A stretch of DNA of 64,000 nt from Bugula neritina (taxonomy: Eukaryota; Animalia; Bryozoa), in contig OZ037770.1 in the NCBI GenBank assembly GCA_964035545.1, positions 5,342,729-5,406,728 on the forward strand, in the 5' to 3' direction. Shown here one piece after another: positions 18,901 to 64,000 of this stretch. Position 1 is the first letter of the stretch. Every line of letters starts with the position of its first letter. A program made the position numbers and the translations under genes. Under the pieces are notes generated by a model, which saw only the letters and a program-made list of their open reading frames with translations, made no database searches and had not been told where the DNA came from.

Positions 18901-21900
18901 AAGCTAAGATCATTTCTCAGTTGATGAAGATGCAAATGGGCATATTACAGTTATTATGCTGCCGCTAATATTTTACTACTTATAACAAAAATAGCAAGTA
19001 TATGTACTAAACTACTCCCATGTAATTTTGAAAGAAAACAAACTCAAAATTAGATAGGCTGATTTAGTTATATCATTGCAGATATATAAGATATATTTTT
19101 TTCAATTGAAAATTAAGGCTTAATTATAATTTAATTTGAATTGAAAAGTTACTAGGCATTATTTATCAGCACCCCCTAAACATGTTCTCAAACGCATTAC
19201 AAAGAACAAACTAAAATGATGCACCAAATTATGACAACACAATGCTGACTCAACAGCTTCAATGATTGGACAGCTACGCTGACACAACAGCTACGCTGAC
19301 ACAACAGCTACGCTGGCTCAACAGCTATGCTGACTATACCTACCAACTTTGCTGTTAGAGGAGATCCTGGCTGAGGCATCTAGATCACTAAACTCTTCCT
19401 GGTCCTTGAAAGTTTCAGCTGCCAGTTGTTTCTGTGAGTTGAGTCGTTCCGCTTGAGCTAATAGGGAAAACAAACTTTTTACTGAGGATAGACAAAGGAA
19501 CATTTTTGATGATAACAAATTACTGTGTCCTGTATGTTAGTGAGCAACATGCTGTAGTGTGTTTTTACTAAAACATATAACCGCAGGGTATATAATAAAA
19601 GCTCTGATAGAAGTTGAAAATTGTTAGTGCCTGCAATATGTTATATACACAAGTGTTGACCGAATAGAACTGTTGTGTGTAAAATTATTTACGCTACCTT
19701 GCTTCGCTGCTTTCCTTTCTCGAGCACGCTGCCTTTGCTGTTTTCTGAGTGCTTTGTTTTCTTTTTTGGCTGCTTTTAAGTCAACTTTGTTAAGAGACTT
19801 ATTTGATTGTCCAGCATTCAGCCGACTGCCTTGTTGAGTCTGACCTTGAAATTGCTCTCTGCCAATTGATGCTCCGCCCACTACATGTACAATAGGAACT
19901 TGTTCACCTTGCAGGGGAGCTGAGCGAGGACTGTGTGACTGTGATAGAGCATTGCGAAGTCTATTTTGTGCTCTAGCTGTCTTTCTACGTTTTTCTTTTT
20001 GTGAAGGCAAAGCTGTCGGCTGAGCCTTTACTTGGTTTACTGCCTTGGAAATGGGAGAAATCTGCACTGCTTGCTTACTATTGGCATTTATATCTGTAGG
20101 CAATTCAACTGGCTTGTTTTTATTGGCTTTGCTTTGAGAATTTCTTTGTTGTTGTCTATTGCTTTTTCTTCTAACTTTCATAAGAGGAGACCTTGTAGCA
20201 ACTTCATCTCTAGTGTTGGGGTTTTCTGCTATTAAGTTAGCTGTTACACTTGGACTGCTTTCATTTATCTTCTTCTTATTTCCTGCTCTAGAATTTGCAT
20301 TAAGTGCTGTCTGTAAAACATTTCCAATCTGACGGCTATCCATGTCACCATCACTTTGAGAAGAAGTAATAGCATTGTTGAGGCCGCCTGCTCCAGCATT
20401 GTTCCTTCCGTTCACTGTGTTTGCAATAAGCTGATGAACTTCTTCTACTGTTGGTTCATTTGGATCTCTTTCTTGTTCTTTTTTCTTAGCCTCAGCTTCA
20501 GACTGTGCGAGAGCTTGCTGTATTAGTTCTGCTAGTTCTTCTGGTGAAGGTGTGCTTTGGCTTTGCTTCTCTGGCGCTTTAGTGGCATTAGGATTGGCTG
20601 CAGCTTGCTTGTCAATAATAGCTTGTGCTAAGCCACCAAGTGGCTGACTCCCAGCATCTTGTGGCTGCCCACCAGTGCTTTGTACTGCTGATGCAATCAG
20701 ACTACCAAAATCACTATTTCCTTGCTGAGAGTTGCCTAAAAGAGACTGAATGAGCCCTGATACACCAGATGGGTGTTGACTGTTGCTCTGTGTTTCAGGA
20801 ACTTGATTAGCAGAAAGATTCTGAACATGAGATTGGTTTGGCTTTCGAGCTCGACGAGCTTTCTTCTGCTGATTTAGTTTTTTATTTCTTTTGGGCTGAA
20901 AGCGAGACTTTCTAGGTTTCTGGAACAATTTATTTGTTGTACTAGTAGTGTTTTGTTGCTCAGTACTATTATGAATAAATATAAGCTGCTTCACCACAGT
21001 CTTTGGCATGTTTGTGGTTGTTTCAGGTAAGTCTGTGCTTTCAAGTTGAGTAAGGTTTGATATCATAGTGCTTGAGCTAGCATTAATAGGTATAACTGTA
21101 GTAACAACTTCATTCAAAGTCATAGCAGCCGATAATTTGGATTCATTTATCATTGAGTCAGTAGACTTGTTGAAAGCAGTTGTTGAATTAATGTCTAGCG
21201 AATTAGTAGGCTCTAAAGTTTGAGATGACAGTAATGGTGTTGATAGGGATTCTACTGCGTAAGTTGTAAGAGAATCAGAAGTATTGTGGCTATGTGTTGA
21301 GGTTGGAGTTGGAGTTGAAGTGAGCTTCACTGGTGATGACGTCGATTCAATTTCTGGTGCAGGTGTTGGTATGTGCTTTGGTGTCGTTGGTAAAAATGTT
21401 GATGTAGGTGCTGGTGCAAGTACTATGGTTGTTGTTTGTAGACGCTTTGAGGTAGATGTGGGTAGACTTTTGGGTGTGGATTTTGATAGATGTTTTGGTG
21501 TGGATGTGGGTAGATGTTTTGGTGTGGTTGTTTGTACAAGTGCTTGTGTAGATGTTGATACGTGTGAGGTTTTTGTTGTTACAGATGTCACTCTAGATGG
21601 AGGTAAATTCACTGATGTCGGTTTCGGTGTGGATATTTTTGTAGATGTTGTTACATAATCTGGTGTTGTTGGCGCAAGTTGGATGGCAGAGTTTGACATA
21701 GGCAAAGACATAGAAGTTTGTGTTGTTGATTTTTGAGATTTGAGTTTAGATGTAGCGACAGGTTTTGGTGTTGGTATAGTTGTTGATGTAGGTGACAACA
21801 AACTTTTAGATGTGGTTGTTGGTCCAAGAGTTTGCGTGGATGTTGGCACATCTTTTGGTGTCATACTAGTTGTTGATAAGTGTTTAGGCGTACTTGTTGG

Positions 21901-23295
21901 CGCAGATGTTTCTGTAGATGTCTGTACACGTTTTGTTGTAGTTTTTGGCAAATGCGGTGGTGTAGATCTGGGTACAGATTTTAGTGTAGTTGTTGGTACA
22001 GGTGTCATAGTAGTTGTTGGTACATGTTTTGTTGTAGTTTTTGGTAAATGCCGTGGTGTAGTTGTGGGTACAGATTTTAGTGTAGTTGTTGGTACAGGTG
22101 TCATGGTAGTTGTTGGTACATGCCTTGTTGTAGTTTTTGGCAAATGTCGTGGTGTAGTTGTTGGTACAGGTGTCATAGTAGTTGTTGGTACAGGTGTCAT
22201 AGTAGTTGTTGGTACATGCCTTGTTGTAGTTTTTGGCAAATGCCGTGGTGTAGTTGTGGGTACAGATTTTAGCGTAGTTGTTGGTACAGGTGTCATGGTA
22301 GTTGTTGGTACATGTTTTGTTGTAGTTTTTGGCAAATGCAGTGGTGTAGATCTGGGTACAGATTTTAGTGTAGTTGTTGGTACAGGTGTCATAGTAGTTG
22401 TTGGTACATGTTTTGTTGTAGTTTTTGGTAAATGCCGTGGTGTAGTTGTGGGTATATATTTTAGTGTAGTTGTTGGTACAGGTGTCATGGTAGTTGTTGG
22501 TACATGCCTTGTTGTAGTTTTTGGCAAATGTCGTGGTGTAATTGTTGGTACAGGTGTCATAGTAGTTGTTAGTACAGGTGTCATAGTAGTTGTTGGTACA
22601 TGTTTTGTTGTAGTTTTTGGCAAATGCCTTGGTTTCAATCTCGGTACAGCCGTTGATTTAAATGATGGTTCATGTGCTGGGGCATTTTTTGGTAAAAGCT
22701 GTGGCCTAGTTGTTGGCACATATTTAGATGTAGTTGTTGGTAAATGTTTCCCAATTGTTGTTGGTACAGTTGGTAGTTTAGATGCTGTTGAGTGTTTTAT
22801 TGTAGTTGCCGGTGTTGGTGAGGATGTAGGATTTGGACTTTTTTCTGTTGTCGTTATTTCATTGCTCATAGCTTTCATTGCTATTGGTTCTAAGAGATCT
22901 GTGTCCGTAGGATTGCTTGCTACTAACAAAGTTTCTGATGATGAGCCCTGATTCTGCTCAATACCAAAATCTTGTGAGCCTGAGTCTGGTGTTTTCCGAC
23001 TGATATCATTACCTAAATAGTGAGGCTGTACTTGATTGGTTTGCTGAGAGATACCCACACCCTGCGTAGTCTGACTCACCGGTGAGTCGGACTGAAGATA
23101 TGTGACGTGAGAACTTGAATAGTAATCTTCCTGCGGTGGATGGTAGGTCCGCCCACTTCCTGTCTGCCGATCACTTCCTCGCAATGACTTGTAGTACTCC
23201 ATTAACTGATCTAGATCAGTAGCGGAATGCTGACTACAGACATGCGCTGTGAGGGTGAGGAAGAGTGTCACTAGGGTTACTGGTGTGCTCAGCAT
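15962..23295 (-). CDS. Secreted mucin-like Thr/Pro/Lys/His-rich repeat protein, ~1346 aa
   Basis: Signal peptide MLSTPVTLVTLFLTLTAHVCS. Exons 19698-23295, 19344-19457, 18270-18364, 15962-16195 splice in frame (4041 nt). Contains PTTTMTPVPTTTLKSVP / TPRHLPKTTTKHV repeats, Lys/Arg-rich patches and Gln/Ser-rich regions. Confidence 0.85.
17190..17534. mobile_element. Non-autonomous hAT (Charlie-like) DNA transposon
   Basis: Termini CAGGGCTGTTCAA ... TTGGACACCCCTA resemble CAGGGGTGTCCAA-type TIRs; internal TGTGGCCC motifs; degenerate 8-bp flanks acttaaag / acttcgag. Confidence 0.65.
17907..18121 (+). mobile_element. tRNA-derived SINE (copy A)
   Basis: tRNA-like head with A box and B box (GGTTCGAGCCC) followed by a conserved body (gagcattcagtcataattgctcctgtgc...aataagtcc...atcaggggtttctcacaggg) shared with three other copies in the window. 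Confidence 0.85.
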
Positions 23296-52295: not shown

Positions 52296-53353
52296 TCATT
52301 GGGTGGACTCTGACTCTTGTAGCGATCGTGCTCTGTGTCGAGCCTGTCGGGCACGTAGCCGCCTCTTCAGTCGCCCCACTGAGTCCTTCAACTGGTATAG
52401 ACCTGTCGTCGTATCCAGCAAGTCAGGGGCAAGTTGTGTGAACTCGGCTTGTAGTCTTACAAGCCGCTCTTCTACATTAACCAGCTGGCTAGGCCTTGGT
52501 GGGGTTGTAGTAGTCTCTGTTAGAGGGGGTATTGTTGTTTCTTCTACTTCTGGGGTGTTGCTAGGGTTGACGGGGGTAGGAGACGGGCCCTGAACCATAG
52601 GGGACTTATGGCGGGCGGATAGCAGCAGTACGTGGAACCCTGACGCTAGTGCGGCCAGGGTGATAGCCTTCCTGATGACTGGCTTGATGGCATCTAGGTA
52701 TAGGGGGAAACTGTCCTCATCAACAGTGTGGTTCTCTCCGGCGAAGCAGCTCAGCTTATGTACTGTCACGGGATACGGGTAGACGTCGTGGAACCCGCAG
52801 GGACAGAAGTGGAGTAGGAAATGGGCGTCTACATGTAAACGCAGGGAGCGGTGTGACGAGCACTCCTCAAAGCAGACCTGGCAGGTTCGGTGGGGTCCAC
52901 TGGGTCCCCAGGCTTCTTCAATTCTCCTTTCCGTCGTGGGTGACACCCAACGGTGTCGTCGACGGAGCACCACGGGTATGCCATTCTCCATTACAGGCTC
53001 CTCTTCCATAGGCAGAGAGGTTGGCTGGTCCCGTGACCGGGAGGTGGTCACTCGAGTGTGATCTGAAAGAGTAGCAGTGTTAAAGATTATACACTGAGGT
53101 ACCGTCGGCGTGTACAGCCTGACCGGTACTCTGTTCAGTTACACTCGTTAGATTCAGGCTAATGAATAGTTGATGGAGAACACACTCGCTATGACAGATT
53201 ATTTAAAATCAAAGTCGACGTGTATTTCCACCACTGTTTATTATTATCGAATCTCCAGCTCGCTAGCTAGTGTAGCTAAAGCTGACTGATGCAGTCTAGT
53301 TATCGTACCAAAAACATAATTAACTCACCCTTCGATCCAGAATAGTAAGACAT
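52296..53353 (-). CDS. Retrotransposon-borne spliced accessory gene, ~263 aa, C2H2-like zinc finger plus coiled coil
   Basis: Exon 53329-53353 (MSYYSGSK+G; donor GTGAGT) joins exon 52296-53062 (acceptor tctttcag) in frame. Contains CQVC-x12-H-x3-H, then CPC...H...C, and a C-terminal heptad region VEERLVRLQAEF...LKDSVGRLKRRL. Confidence 0.7.
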
Positions 53354-53376
53354 TTTGGAATGAGAGCGGTAAATGA

Positions 53377-54507
53377 TTACTGTTTACTGGCACGTCTACT
53401 CTTGACTGCATCAACATAGGAAAAGACCGGACAGCGTGGTTGTGAAACGTGACTAGGGCTTTTCACTTCCAGCGGATGAATCTCGTGTGAGATTCCGCCG
53501 AGGCAAAAGTTGAGATTTTCGTGGTGATCACAACTCCCACGGCTCTTTGCCTGTTTTCCCATGCGAGGCCTCTCTAGACTTTCGTTACTGCCGCTTATAC
53601 CGCGGTCACGTACACAGTCTCTGAGACACGCTGGAAGTTGCCTAGTGTGTAGTCCTGGTCCTACGTTGGTATCTCCTTGCGGAGCCCCTCCCACGGGGGG
53701 TTTTTGCACTTCCGGACCCGTTTCTGGTTCCGGAAGTGGTGGTGATGGCAGGCTTGACGTTGGGGGCGGTGGGCGCACTTTCAAGGACGGAAGTGGCCTT
53801 TCTCGCCTCTCCAAGTCTTCCTGACGTGTCATGGAGGTGTTTCCGGCCAGGCTGACAGTCTCCGCCTGCCGAGACCTTCTCGCACAATGCGTCTGCCGCC
53901 CCGCTTCACCAGGGAGACGGCTATGCTTGTTGGTCTGGCAGACTTTGCACCGTCTCACTCTGCGCTGGATATTCCGTTCCATGTTGGGCCAGTACCACCG
54001 GAGTTGTAGCTTGGTGACCACCCCTTGGATTCCTCCGTGAGTCTCCTCGTGGGTGTCTTGTATCAACTTCCGGCGGATGGCAACTGGGCAGACAACCCTC
54101 TTCCTGGCTGGCTGTCTGCTGTTGGCGGCCAAGGTCATGGTCAGCAGACCATCTGGCCCGACCCGCAGAGAGCTCCAACGTTGACAGTACAGCCGTAACT
54201 CGGCGCATCCCTGTCGTCGTTGTTTACTACTGGGTCGTCGCCCTTCCTGTTTCGCTCGGTACACGTCGGCTACCACCCCAGGAAGGCTTTCCTGGAGCTT
54301 CGGCAGCTCCCTAACGTTACCAGCCCATACAGGTTTGGCGCGGAGGCTCTGGACAGCCTCCGGGGGCGTGTCAGCCCTCTGTTGGAGTAGCTGAGCAGGG
54401 GCGGTCCTCGCCGCCCGTGGTACCTCACGACAGCCTGCTCTATTTAGGCGGGCTCCGTGGTCTGTGTGGCGGAACGCCTCACTGTACCCATGTGGCAACC
54501 TAGCCAT
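53377..54507 (-). pseudogene. pol remnant with integrase H2C2 zinc-binding domain
   Basis: LTMTL...RVVCPVAIRRKLIQDTHEETHGGIQGVVTKLQLRWYWPNMERNIQRRVRRCKVCQ; the catalytic core is missing. Confidence 0.75.
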
Positions 54508-54585
54508 AGCCTGGCGCTTTTTGTTGCCTGTGCAGCCACGCGTCCCTGGAGGAGGGGAGGCGTGGGTTGGGACGGTCCTCCGCCC

Positions 54586-55155
54586 TCAAGACGGGCTCTG
54601 CTGAGGACCTTCCGTCTTAGCTCCCGACGACGGCCCAATGGCTTCCTCCTGGACAAGATGGAAGCGACCCAGCATGGATCTGGGTGGTAGGTCTACTGTC
54701 TCTGAGAAAGGGTTGACACACTGCACTGAGATCTCTCCTTGTCCCGTAAGCCGGCTAAAGCTATGGGCAAGTTGGACTCTCGAGTGCGTACTTTCGACAA
54801 CTCCCAACTCAGAGGTTTGGCCACCGTCTACCTTGCAGCGGACGGTAGCCCGGGAGTGGCCTGGTATAGTACAGCGCCGTACTACCTGCACTGCTCCCGC
54901 TAGAGGACGACCAAACTTATCGACACAAGCGAGCTCCTTGTCGCCCATGATCATCGCAGATTTACTGAAATCGATGCGACATCCGTGTCGTTGTAAGAAT
55001 GGCATCCCGAGGATGGCATCCTCGTTGAGCTGCCCGACGATAAACGTCTCTTGGATGGCCTGGTTACGGACGTAACCAGTTAGCTCAATAATGCCGTAGA
55101 AGGGAATGCATGACCCGTCTGCCAGGGTGCCATGATCCCCCTCATACGGTGTCAA
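54586..55155 (-). pseudogene. Retropepsin-like aspartic protease remnant
   Basis: ADGS flap and DAILGMPFL motifs present; the N-terminal D(T/S)G is absent because of truncation. Confidence 0.75.
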
Positions 55156-57728: not shown

Positions 57729-60700
57729 TTAGGAATGATCCTCTCTATTGGGTTTTTCCTCTTCATCCAACCCATCAAAGCCAGGAAACAGGTAAAGTCT
57801 TTTACGGGGAGGAAGAGTCTTCCAGATTACAACCAAATTTCTGCTTCTCTCTGAATCTTCATCTGCATAAAGTTTCTTTACTAGTTTAGTCTGCACCTGT
57901 AGAGTAAGTAATGACTAGTAAGATTGTGTACCAATGTACTACCAGATGAGATAAACATTTACAACTCTTAGCTGCTGGAATATATCGTCTTACTCTTACT
58001 TGTATCAAATCTAAGCAGCAAAATCTTGAGAGTTGTCAGGTACAATTAACAATATAAGATATATCATTGCAGTGAGACTGAGACAGTCTGTAAACCTTTA
58101 CAACAGGCTGATAGAAAAATATAAATCAAGGAATATGAATAATCAACAGCTGAAATAAAAGAAATGTGTTTATATAAAACCATAAATCAGCAAAACTATC
58201 ATTCTACTCTTACCTGCTTGAAAATGGTGTAGAGATCACGGTGACAGGCATGTTTGTAGATTGAAGATACTAGAGCTCTGATCATAGGAGATCCATACTT
58301 AGGATGCCTCTTTGATGCTATAATAAGAATAAATGCAGTCAAAACCATGGTGCAATCAGAGCAAGCTCAGTATATTTTAAAATTTTGTTCAGTTTTGATG
58401 AGCAGTGTTTGGTATATACTTTTTTAAAGACAAGTCTAAAAGATTGGATTAAGGAGAGACAACTTCCTGAATAACTGCAACTGTGCACATGTAAAACTGG
58501 CCAATCACTATTTAGTATACGTACAGCAGACGTTACTCTTTAGAACAAGAAGATTATCAACATCCAGTCTTGTCATACGTTCTTCTATTCTAGGTGCTGG
58601 TGGTGAGACAGGTCTGATGGGTCTTATTACACTGGGTGTTTCAAGATATACAATATCATCATCAGATTCAGAATGTGTAGAAGAGACAGCTTCAGTTTCT
58701 TCTTCTTGAGCTGCTGCAAGACCTGATCTGTCTGGAATCACCTCAATGTTTGCTGCAACACAAACATGTAATTTGATAAGCGAAATAATTTAGAGACTTT
58801 CAATTCTTTGGCCTTAAAAATCAAAACTGTTATTTAGACTAGAGTGAGCAATAATCAGATGACTGATGTCTGACAGGGTAGAGGAAGTCTAGACTAGTGA
58901 GACCATTGACCTTAAAGTGATGATTTATATTACAGAACAGTGACTACCTCCACTGCTGGCTTCTAGGATGACAACTTTAGGTTTTCTCCTCATTCCGTCA
59001 AAATACAAAGGAGTGAGCAAATCATACAGATCGATGAGGTTAACCTTCTCAAGGTCAGTTCCATAGATGCAGCTATCTTCTCCACCATGAGTCATAACAA
59101 CCAGTATATGACATCCAAACTCTTTGTGTTTTTCCTCTTTCACTTCAGACTTCACTGCAGACAGTGTTTCCTACAGTGTGCAGAATTTTCAGGTGAATAT
59201 TTCTCAGAAGCCTTTCATTTACATTATTGTGAAGCCAAAAGCCATTTGAATGATTCCACCATTATATCTATTTGGAAATGTCATGTTTGACTATGTAAGT
59301 CAGAGTTAGTTATAAGAATAACACGAAATATTATTCATCATGATTGTAATGGTAATTGGTAATGCCAATATAGCATTTAATACCAAAAACACTATTATCT
59401 GTTGAAATTTACACAATCAAAACTTTTAACCTATTTCCTTTATTCATTTTTAGATTTTACGACAACTAAAATAACCAACTGTGTATAAAAACATGCTAGA
59501 ACTTTGCTGTTTTCTCAAAAACATAGATCAATAAATCTCAAAGAAAAACTTTTATTCAAAATTTAAAATTCTCAATAATCAGGTCAATGAAAGCAAAGTG
59601 GAGAGAGTTTTTTTAAATGTATAAAAGGTGACTTTATAGTTGGAAATCATTGCTTAAAGTCTAAATGTGTACCTCTGCTGTCAAGTTTGTGTGTGTCACA
59701 ACATCAAACTTGAGAGATTTCAACATGACAGACATGTTCTCAACATCAGCATCTGAACCTTCCCTGCATAAGTCTGGTCTCTCAACAAAATGTTTGTTGT
59801 TTATTATCAGAGCGTTTCCTCTTTTTCTTGTCATACTGAACACCTGCAGAAAAGTCAATTTATAATAAAAGATACAGTATTGGCATGTAAGTCTACTGAA
59901 TGAAGAGTATAAAGCTCGAAAAAACATTCTCAATATAAATTGAGAAAACCTCCTAACAGGTTGGCGGACTGATCTTTATAAGGTCTGCTTTGTTACTAAA
60001 ATAGGTGAACAGTGATAACATGAAAATGCTATATTGCATTGAGTACTTGAGTTAACATGCCAAACAAGTTTTATAAACTAAAATCTTAACCTTGTCAGCA
60101 TTTGTAAAGAGATTTTTTATCTTCAGGTTGCTGGTCGGCTTCAGTTTGAGTTGTATCAACTTCATATCCTTCTCAATCGCTTCATCAAGGTTCAGATTGT
60201 CATCATCTTCAGAGAGATCACTCAGATCATCATCACCAAATTCATCTGCAGTCACATAATTAGACAGATTATGGTCAACATTTGAAAGCGGTATACTAAG
60301 TATTTTGCTTAGTTTCCAGAAGAAGCATTTATTTTAAAAGAAGATGCTTTTAGACATGGTTTTTATATCGAAATCACCAGGTAAATCAAAAAATTTACAA
60401 TAATTGTTCAGTTTGTCAAACAATTGCAGCATTGCAATAGTAAATCCGCTAACTATGTTAATAGTACAGGTAAATAAAATTATAGATAATAATGCACCAG
60501 CTCTACTTGAATCATTCTGCTGTTTACGAAGTTTGAGTTCAGCCAGTAACTTCTCCAACTCAATAGTTTCTGTCTCAGACAAAGTCTCACCTAAGTAATG
60601 CAAACCAGCTCACATATATTATGAATAAAACCAAGTAAAATAAAGTTTCAACCCTAGTATGTAATAGTTTTACGTTTTACATCAAAATTTAAAAAAAATA

Positions 60701-62872
60701 ATTAAAAGAGAGCAGCTAGTTCTGGTTAGATTGTGTAGTGATTATCCGTTAAGGAATAACTTTATTATTCTATCAAGAGTAAATTAGCACGCACGCAAGC
60801 TCTCACACACAGACCCACAGGTACACCCACACAAACACGCGCACACACACACACCATCTATAAACTTACATGGATGAATTAGAGCTCTTGGTATCTCTTC
60901 ATTATAGCACAGGGTTGTAGAAGATCCACTGCACTTCTTGAAATCTGGTGAAGGTTTTTTCAAAGAGCGAAAACACCATTTTGGATGAACAATTTTATTG
61001 GGGCAAGGAATTCCTAGCAGCATGCAGTGAGCACAAATGCAGGCAGTAACTGGTCGGCTAGCAGTCCATGTTTCCATAACATGTCTTAGAACATTGTTGT
61101 TGGCTGAAATGAGTTTTTCCCATGCTTTGGTGATATTATTTGAATCAGATGATGTGTAGAGTAAAACTCTTCTAGACTGATAGTCATGTACCAGCTGTGT
61201 GTATATTCTATCTTGATAAACAATGGCTCCATTTTTCTTCACCTCCACTTTAGCAAAATCATTGGAAAACAGTTCCAACAACCCAACTGTCATTTGATGG
61301 TAGACATGCTGCGGTAAAGCCAGACCATTGAAATGTGTCTCGGTATGAAGGAACAGGCTTTTCGGTGACGCGTAGGAGATGCTATAAGTTTCCTTGGCAA
61401 ACTGAGGAATTATAAAGTAATGCTCTCCAGACTCATTTTCCAATGGGCCATATAGCAAACGGAATGTTCTGAGCAAGTGGATAGCAATTTCAACGTCACT
61501 AGTAGCAGTAAACGCAGTTTCTTTTCTGATCAAATATTCAAGAAGAGATTTCATCATCAAGCCATTGTTTTTGAAACAATTCACTGACTCTTGGAAGTCT
61601 TGTTTTTCAATCTTGACTCCTTCTATGGAATAATACGGTTTGAACTGATCAACTCGACTCTGCCAAATGTTTGGGTCATGGTGATACAAAACACACAACA
61701 GTTTGGTTACTTCCGTGATCTTGTGGAATATGTATGGCTTGAGTGCATCAATATTCTTATACCACAATACTTTGCCACAATCATGCATGTATATGAGGAT
61801 GGTATCTAATTGGTTTACTTCAATATCATCCCGTTCTTTCTTTATCTCTGCCAATATTTCATCGAAAGTATTGTGTGCAGACTGCAAAGACAACACCTTT
61901 GTGTTGACATCTTCCCAGACTTTTGGAAGGGGTTTGACAAAGTGCTGGCAACTTTGAAGGAGAGACTTTTTTATTGATTCGAACACCATGTAATCATCAT
62001 CTTTCCCAACTTCATAGATATCTTTGTTAGAAGATACTATTCCCATTGAGTCATTAAAATGTTTAATTTCTGCAAATTCACCGTCTAGGCCTTTCTCTTC
62101 TTCAAGAATTTCTTTGCACAGCTGATCAGATACTTGGAAAAATTTCTTGTGAAGCTTCGAAAACTGTTCTTTCTGAAATTTATCTTTGTGCGTCAAGACA
62201 AGCTTTGGTGGGCCAATATATGGATGGGCGAGATAGAGGTGAGACATGTAATCAAAAGCCAACTTCCTGACAGCCTCTCTGTCTGTAGACGATTTTGAAA
62301 TCTGATCATACTGCTCCATGTTGACTACAATTACTGGTACACAATTCTGTCTCAGTGTCAAATGATAGGTGATATGGTAGACCTCCTGGCCTCCCATATC
62401 TATGAGACGAAGAGTTGTACCATCCACCTTCACCTCTTCCACATTAAACACTTTTGTGGTTTCATCATGCTCTGCATTAGGACTTCTGTCAGTCAGAACT
62501 CTCTTCTTGTCAGTGCTCTGTAATGTTCTGATCAGACTGGTTTTACCTGCCATGGTGTTCCCCAACACTGCTATTGTAGCAAATGGCAAGTTTCTACCAG
62601 TGCCCTTAGCCAAATCTGTGTAGTATTGTCGCACAGCATTTAATCCTCTCCGACAAACTTCTAGTGGAGGAGATGTAAGAGCATCGCAATAATCTATATT
62701 CAGTGTGTAAAGACGGGTTAGCTGTAGTATCTCAGGGTTCAAGGATGTCATGAATTTGTTGAAGAAAAGATTCAGTGTGTGCAGATTACTCAATATGCAC
62801 ACTGACGATGGTAGACAGGTGAAGCAATTCATTGATAAGTTTAGTGTCTGTAGCTCCTGTAGATTCTGTATC
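57729..62872 (-). CDS. ROCO protein (LRR-Roc-COR) fused to a C-terminal caspase (peptidase C14) domain with catalytic Cys->Ser; 5' end lies upstream, probably outside the window
   Basis: Exons 60870-62872, 60498-60590, 60091-60245, 59673-59843, 58948-59170, 58525-58752, 58214-58317, 57729-57896, all GT-AG with matching phases (1,1,0,0,1,1,0), give >1047 aa. LRRs (LQTLNLSMNCFTCLP, LHTLNLFFN, SPPLEV); Roc G1 GNTMAGKTS, G3 DMGGQEVY, G4 THKD; COR (LIYMHDCGKVLWY); caspase RGNALIINN, REGSDAD, MTHG, KPKVVILEASSG, KRHPKYGS, TLPPRKRLYLFPG. Confidence 0.88.
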
Positions 62873-63319
62873 CTAATAAAATAGTATATTTCTATTACCA
62901 GCACACATATGTAGAAAAGAGAATAAAACATGATATCAGAAGAGTACCCAAGAGGACATTCGAAAGTAAGAGAAATCAAGGACACCCAAAGCATAGATGG
63001 CAGGAGACAATCAGAAATGATATCCAGTCACGTTGCATGAGAGTCACTATAATAAACTCATATAAAATTCTTTGAAGCCGTACAGTACATAGATATGTAT
63101 CCAAAAAATCACCTTAATAGTAACTACAAGTAGGTATAGGCTAAGCTACAATTATTATATTACATACTGTATGTAAAAAGGTGTTATATGGTGAGAGTAG
63201 ATACAACATAGAACGAAGATTGAAAAACTGGAAGAGAAAATTAGTGGATGTCCACCTAAAAGTCAGCGGGTCTAAAACTGAGTACCTATCACCACAGAAG
63301 GCAGCAATGACATCAGATT

Positions 63320-64000
63320 GAGATAATAAATTCTTTGGATGGCTTATCAATGGTCCAGCTTTCTAGTGCCAATGTCAATAACTGGACCTTCCTTTGGCCC
63401 AAAGAAACTTTCACTTTTTTATTCAACGAACATATTAAGATGATCAAATTTTTATGGTTATTAGGCTTTATACAGGCATTTGTTGTTTCTGGGTGGAGTT
63501 TCTCTCTCTCTATACTTGCAACTGTGGCAATCTTCTTAATATTGACCTCCTCCACCTGATTCTGATTTCTTTTCCCAAGTTCACTCTACTGGATGGGCTG
63601 ATTTTTGGGGCTCTCCTGGTATAATTTTACTCCTTTGAATTGTAAAAACTGAGAGAAACTTTAAAAAAGCTGAGCTCTCAGAATACTTTAAGGAAACTAA
63701 AAGTGATGGATTTCTTCAAGTTGAGAAGGAAGCACAGACAGTGAACAATGGAATAACAGGGTTGAGAGTTTTTCCCTTCATTTGAAAGCTGCAAAAATCA
63801 GCCCATCTGGTAAAGTGAACTATAGGAAAAAAACGGAAGAAAGTGGAGGAAGCCATTACTGAGAAGGTGGCCACAGTGTTGAGTTTAGATGAAAAGGAAC
63901 TCATCCCAGAAGCAACAACTGTCTGTATAAAGCCTAGTGATCATGAAGATTTGAACAAATTATTATTATTCCTCGAATAAGAACGTGAAAGTTTTCTTGC
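63320..64000. repeat. Two diverged, inverted copies of a degraded coding (transposon-like) fragment
   Basis: ~63390-63607 (-) and ~63791-64000 (+) share caaaaatcagcccatc...gtggagga...gccacagt...cccagaa.caacaa.tg.ctgtataaagccta. Translations: VEEVNIKKIATVASIEREKLHPETTNACIKP versus VEEAITEKVATVLSLDEKELIPEATTVCIKP. Confidence 0.7.

Follow-up and report, generated by a model that had tools for sequence, protein, structure and literature searches.

The ROCO-caspase gene and probable transcripts of close copies

The window, i.e. the whole stretch of 64,000 nucleotides of Bugula neritina DNA that was analysed, carries on its minus strand a gene in which an LRR-Roc-COR module is followed by a caspase fold. 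As originally predicted, this gene comprises eight exons with matching phases (all seven introns GT-AG, 195-502 nt, n=7, phases 1, 1, 0, 0, 1, 1, 0), and its spliced path is open, stop codons being absent from the eight exons as well as from the split codons. The exons sum to 1,047 codons, i.e. 1,047 aa within the window. Exon 1, as far as it lies there (60870..62872; 2,003 nt, 667 codons), runs from a phase-2 acceptor to a phase-1 donor and encodes the last LRRs, Roc, COR-A, and a COR-B with a CxHC motif. It is followed by a short linker, probably helical, that is present at 29 of the 30 paralog loci (exon 2, 60498..60590), and by a linker rich in Asp (exon 3, 60091..60245). The large caspase subunit begins in exon 4 (59673..59843; Peptidase_C14, E 8.5e-10) with the first specificity Arg (LCREGS), and continues with the catalytic exon 5 (58948..59170). 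Exon 6 (58525..58752) comprises the linker between the subunits, in which VIPD and SESD are Asp sites, and the beginning of the small subunit, exon 7 (58214..58317) the second specificity Arg, and exon 8 (57729..57896) the end of the small subunit. The p20 and p10 subunits and the LYLFPG motif that had been expected to close the protein are thus all present, except that a 16-residue tail still separates this motif from the TAA stop.

The phase-2 start of exon 1 indicates that the gene is incomplete at its 5' end in the window. Using a paralog cassette as query, at least four LRR cassettes were found upstream on the same strand, outside the window (C6:5408518-5411829), while the cassettes of this gene were not among the matches listed from a Pfam LRR_8 search of the genome; the LRR cassettes of paralogs are 141-nt exons, apparently of phase 2-2. 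Neither a signal peptide nor a membrane segment was seen in the in-window part of the protein. Just downstream of the gene, the minus strand contains a GC-rich region (52296-55155, about 50%) with ORFs, one of which matches Integrase_H2C2 (E 3.8e-14), and which is probably an LTR-retrotransposon remnant. Further away, a minus-strand ORF of 1,223 codons (19624-23295) starts like a signal peptide and is rich in Thr, Ser, and Pro; it has no Pfam match and, judging from its composition, appears mucin-like.

Domain and similarity searches of the spliced model were made exon by exon. In exon 1, Pfam recognizes LRRs and Roc (PF08477, E 5.7e-7, above cut-off), together with a weak COR-A below cut-off (E 4.7e-4). 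The Roc motifs GNTMAGKTS, ETT, DMGG, and THKD are intact and are conserved in 30 paralogs. Besides, the structure model of this exon (pLDDT 86.6) aligns along the whole LRR-Roc-COR of LRRK1 (E 1.8e-24) and of the C. tepidum Roco, CtRoco (E 2.8e-21), LRRK2 being matched as well, all of which bears out the claim of a 2-kb LRR-Roc-COR exon. As modelled, the protein is a ROCO protein, with a Roc domain carrying the G1-G4 motifs and COR directly after it. A STAND ATPase of the NACHT or NB-ARC type is absent from the eight exons, whose NTPase is Roc, and any likeness to NLR or inflammasome sensors is by analogy only.

Contigs of four runs, probably RNA, were mapped to the window. They cover mainly exons, introns 4 and 7 showing empty bins, and they splice exons 2-3, 3-4, 4-5, 5-6, and 6-7; the exon 3-4 joint, from the linker to the caspase, was recovered in runs X2 and X3 from two studies, and the exon 6-7 joint is exact in run X2. 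Two of the junctions proposed for checking, 60498>60245 and 60091>59843, are thereby found spliced in RNA contigs of close copies. The third one, 60870>60590 between exons 1 and 2, is not among the joints listed from the contigs of the four runs; in run X2, two contigs of equal depth each extend 12-14 letters past this joint, which only hints at a splice. Since the contigs diverge by about 3-12% from the window and their variants fit none of 30 loci well (best 7/13), they represent the family or another allele rather than the window sequence itself. In addition, a 514-letter contig of run X1 (62845-63363) crosses the exon-1 acceptor unspliced into the upstream intron with 29 differences; it may stem from DNA, from a transcript that retains the intron, or from a paralog with an alternative start.

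A caspase fold without the catalytic cysteine, in a large paralog family

Peptidase_C14 (PF00656) matches exons 4, 5, and weakly 7, and the best PDB matches of the caspase exons are CED-3 and caspase-8; the encoded region is predicted to be a caspase (C14A) fold with homology to both the large and the small subunit and with an inter-subunit linker. The caspase had been described as complete, but it is not catalytically so: while the catalytic His is retained (codon 59089-59087), the position of the catalytic Cys is occupied by Ser (AGC codon 58957-58955, minus strand), the usual QACxG reading EASSG. This pentapeptide aligns with the QASRG of the CED-3 entry 4m9r, which we take to be a laboratory-inactivated mutant. 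In the specificity pocket (Arg, Gln, Arg), both Arg are retained and Gln is replaced by Glu, and the loop that leads to the Arg of the small subunit is short by two residues relative to CED-3, Watersipora, and three other paralogs. Because of the Cys-to-Ser change and the shortened loop, this copy very probably adopts a caspase fold with no protease activity and would thereby be a pseudo-caspase. cFLIP-L and other pseudo-caspases also have a caspase fold devoid of the catalytic Cys. The parallel with cFLIP-L would be one of function; the present protein is fused to an LRR-ROCO and shows no DED or CARD, none of its eight in-window exons giving a death-fold match for such a prodomain.

The fusion holds, and the gene does not stand alone: the genome contains at least 66 full ROCO exons of 59-100% identity, its own included, in arrays on C6 and C1, and the caspase catalytic exon has 133 matches genome-wide. 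When the two match tables were paired by hand, a same-strand caspase exon was found downstream of each of the 66 ROCO exons, within 5 kb for 61 of them and within 16 kb for the remainder. Exons 5-8 of the paralogs, like the upstream LRR exons of the present gene, are known as search positions or motif matches. According to motif searches, the catalytic residue of the 66 paralogs is Cys in 53 (QAC, EAC, ETC, EVC, or HAC), Ser in eight, and unread in five. Among the Cys members, many have Glu or His at the pocket Gln and some are devoid of the second Arg, so that even these may not be ordinary Asp-cutting caspases. The Ser is encoded by AGC in seven copies and by TCC in one, and the use of two distinct codons suggests that the change arose at least twice; an additional AGC copy lies at C6:3521341, without a scored ROCO exon. 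On a quick tree of the ROCO sequences, the Ser copies are scattered among the Cys copies, and this interleaving suggests that caspase modules have been exchanged between paralogs.

Purifying selection acts on Roc and COR (dN/dS 0.18-0.22). The LRR part evolves faster, with a ratio of 0.47 that reaches 0.96 against the nearest paralog, and in the seven LRR cassettes compared the changes fall mainly on the exposed x residues of the LxxLxLxxN repeat. For caspase exon 4, the ratio is about 0.27 overall.

Relatives in bryozoans, other animals, and bacteria

Close relatives of the gene occur in JGI assemblies, with up to 79% identity, and more divergent contigs (33-40% identity) keep the order of LRR, ROCO, and a QACAG caspase. 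In the public protein sets, the Watersipora subatra models XP_067947674.1 and XP_067948342.1, among others, and the Bugula neritina model KAF6038145.1 are single chains of 1,300-1,400 aa of the same bryozoan family, labelled as MFHAS1 homolog, as CASP8 (UniProt, KAF6038145.1), or as uncharacterised. Unlike the copy in the window, these models keep the Cys (QACSG or QACGG in Watersipora, QSCSG also being found). The notion of a sensor, a switch, and a caspase on one polypeptide is therefore upheld for the family, of which 53 of 66 members keep the Cys and which has full-length models in two bryozoans, but not for the present copy as an effector protease. In two of these models, P0087 (XP_067948342.1) and P0213 (KAF6038145.1), the Cys is intact and the Roc P-loop is degenerate or unmatched; by sequence they seem to be the mirror case, a dead switch with a live protease.

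Outside bryozoans, about a dozen LRR-Roc-COR-caspase models are available from several amphioxus species (XP_002614028.1 / C3XQ16 and about 11 more). They resemble the bryozoan ones in domain order and form a small multigene family, whereas C3XQ16 keeps QACRG, which this copy does not. On a second quick tree, of Roc-COR, the bryozoan sequences, including those of Watersipora, form one clade (SH-aLRT 100), and the caspase-fused ROCOs of amphioxus cluster with other ROCOs of these animals that have GT4 or OTU at the end (support 99). This separation suggests either independent fusion or effector swapping. Given its place in this clade and its downstream caspase exons, the present copy is assigned by sequence to the bryozoan LRR-ROCO-caspase family.

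The original prediction knew of no characterised animal example, and none was found in the literature covered; the architecture itself, however, had already been noted. Amphioxus proteins combining LRRs and a caspase with an intact QACXG were reported in 2008 and proposed to be a shortcut from recognition to apoptosis (PMC2575513); the passages on them name no Roc-COR, and they may correspond to the LRR-Roc-COR-caspase models. In the annelid Owenia fusiformis, a caspase with a ROC prodomain, one gene, is mentioned in passing (PMC11463336), i.e. ROC stands upstream of a caspase in another lophotrochozoan. In bacteria, LRR-AP-GTPase-COR conflict proteins carry at least 24 effectors, including caspase (PMC8195603). 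They share with the present family fast LRRs, Roc-COR, and a variable C-terminal effector, but they are prokaryotic and distant on the ROCO tree, whereas the caspase described here is of metazoan type and has introns. MFHAS1/MASL1, LRRK1/2, and the C. tepidum Roco have the LRR-Roc-COR fold and the GTPase motifs in common with this protein, but no caspase, and only 12-16% identity in structural alignments. The design as such is thus not new: bacteria have it, and there are glimpses of it in amphioxus and in an annelid. The contribution of this locus is the subset of dead caspases and its scatter among active copies.

The C-termini of animal ROCOs vary in other ways, with GT4, OTU, caspase plus GT4, CARD, and HEPN plus CARD among those of Branchiostoma (P0093, P0110, P0205, P0208), Lingula (P0146, the Lingula ROCO ending in CARD), and P0129, and with TIR at the end of an Aplysia ROCO (PMC9334734). 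By analogy, the C-termini of animal LRR-ROCOs would be an effector-swapping system resembling the bacterial one. Metagenome contigs searched with exon 5 gave one match, unrelated, and the literature covered, which includes few subscription journals, contains nothing specific on bryozoan or Bugula ROCO-caspases or on invertebrate pseudo-caspase expansions, and no functional test.

Possible function of the Ser-bearing copy

We give about even chances to the reading that this copy belongs to a large family of cytosolic LRR-Roc-COR-caspase receptors of bryozoans as one of its non-catalytic members, likely tuning a Cys-bearing paralog. In such receptors, the LRR array would bind a ligand, probably microbial or non-self, and this binding would shift the nucleotide state of Roc-COR and the balance between monomer and dimer. 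In the Cys members, paired caspase domains would be brought together or freed and would then process themselves. The present copy would still sense and would most likely pair with a Cys paralog through COR and caspase-fold contacts, tuning its partner either as an activating subunit bringing in a further specificity or as a brake; in the same line, cFLIP-L tunes caspase-8. For a model of activation by dimerisation, the switch may work in either direction, since the best-studied Roco, from C. tepidum, forms a dimer without nucleotide or with GDP and a monomer once GTP is bound (PMC5714945). Activation could thus use the GDP dimer, or release from a restrained dimer.

An alternative, rather unlikely in our view, is that the caspase of this lineage is a decaying, non-functional module in a fast birth-and-death array, the gene being an LRR-ROCO of the MFHAS1 kind or a nascent pseudogene. 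The several active-site lesions (Gln to Glu, Cys to Ser, the short substrate loop) would fit such a decay, as would a stop in the ROCO exon of one Ser copy (L027) and the Watersipora ROCO models with a truncated caspase or none; yet a Cys copy (L004) has a stop too. All caspase exons are open here with intact splice sites, no stops occur in the matches to exons 5 and 7 at the Ser loci, and nine Ser copies persist. Besides, the exon-4 dN/dS of three Ser copies (0.24-0.39, small counts) resembles that of all copies; the value for the Ser copies is based on 57 codons and may be older than the Ser change.

Retention of the His and of both specificity Arg, along with the Asp-rich linkers as potential cut sites and the frequent swapping of the C-terminal slot of animal ROCOs, could also be expected of an integrated decoy, in which the dead caspase fold would bait microbial proteases or inhibitors of caspases, and the ROCO switch, together with a separate active paralog, would be triggered once these bind or cut it. 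However, fast change is seen in the LRRs and not in the caspase fold, the opposite of what a bait predicts, and we know of no such microbial factor for bryozoans, which makes this reading improbable. Slightly less credible still is a role in colony self/non-self recognition or in programmed polypide turnover rather than in microbial defence, with this copy as the inhibitory partner: bryozoans are colonial and recycle their zooids, and variable LRR arrays with a death effector would suit allorecognition equally, but parallel expansions are found in the solitary amphioxus, the bacterial anti-invader systems are a parallel (PMC8195603), and, as mentioned above, neither a signal peptide nor a membrane segment was seen in the in-window part. 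Finally, it is very improbable that the Ser is an assembly error or a rare allele, eight loci sharing the AGC motif, or that ROCO and caspase are separate transcripts, as a read-through of exon 1 to the stop at 60784 and some unspliced contigs might imply, given the conserved linker exons spliced to the caspase and the single-chain models in Watersipora and Bugula.

Returning to the tuning of Cys-bearing paralogs, a wider and more speculative proposal, which we regard as doubtful, is that bryozoans replaced NLRs with a ROCO-caspase repertoire of dozens of receptors with reshuffled LRR, GTPase, and caspase modules, the dead copies being selected as paired sensors or brakes through GTPase-gated heterodimers. 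Six-frame searches of the genome, which genes with short exons may escape, gave one weak partial match for NACHT and none for NB-ARC. If the receptor reading holds, the family would be a type of animal death or immune receptor whose switch is a small GTPase rather than a STAND ATPase, active and dead members occurring together, and would explain how intracellular threats are sensed where hardly any NLR genes can be detected in the genome. With the Cys paralogs, the Roc-COR monomer-dimer cycle, which is debated for LRRK2, could then be read out directly as protease activity, and the present copy would be a natural inactive control.

Caspase exons are also found in other settings in this genome. 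Those clustered at C1:32868442-33658733 read VAC or LAC at the catalytic motif and have no adjacent scored ROCO exon, LRR cassettes being near some of them, and near-identical QAC caspases stand in tandem at C7:5068524-5110477, C7:7582733-7711647, and C9:9322752-9412877.
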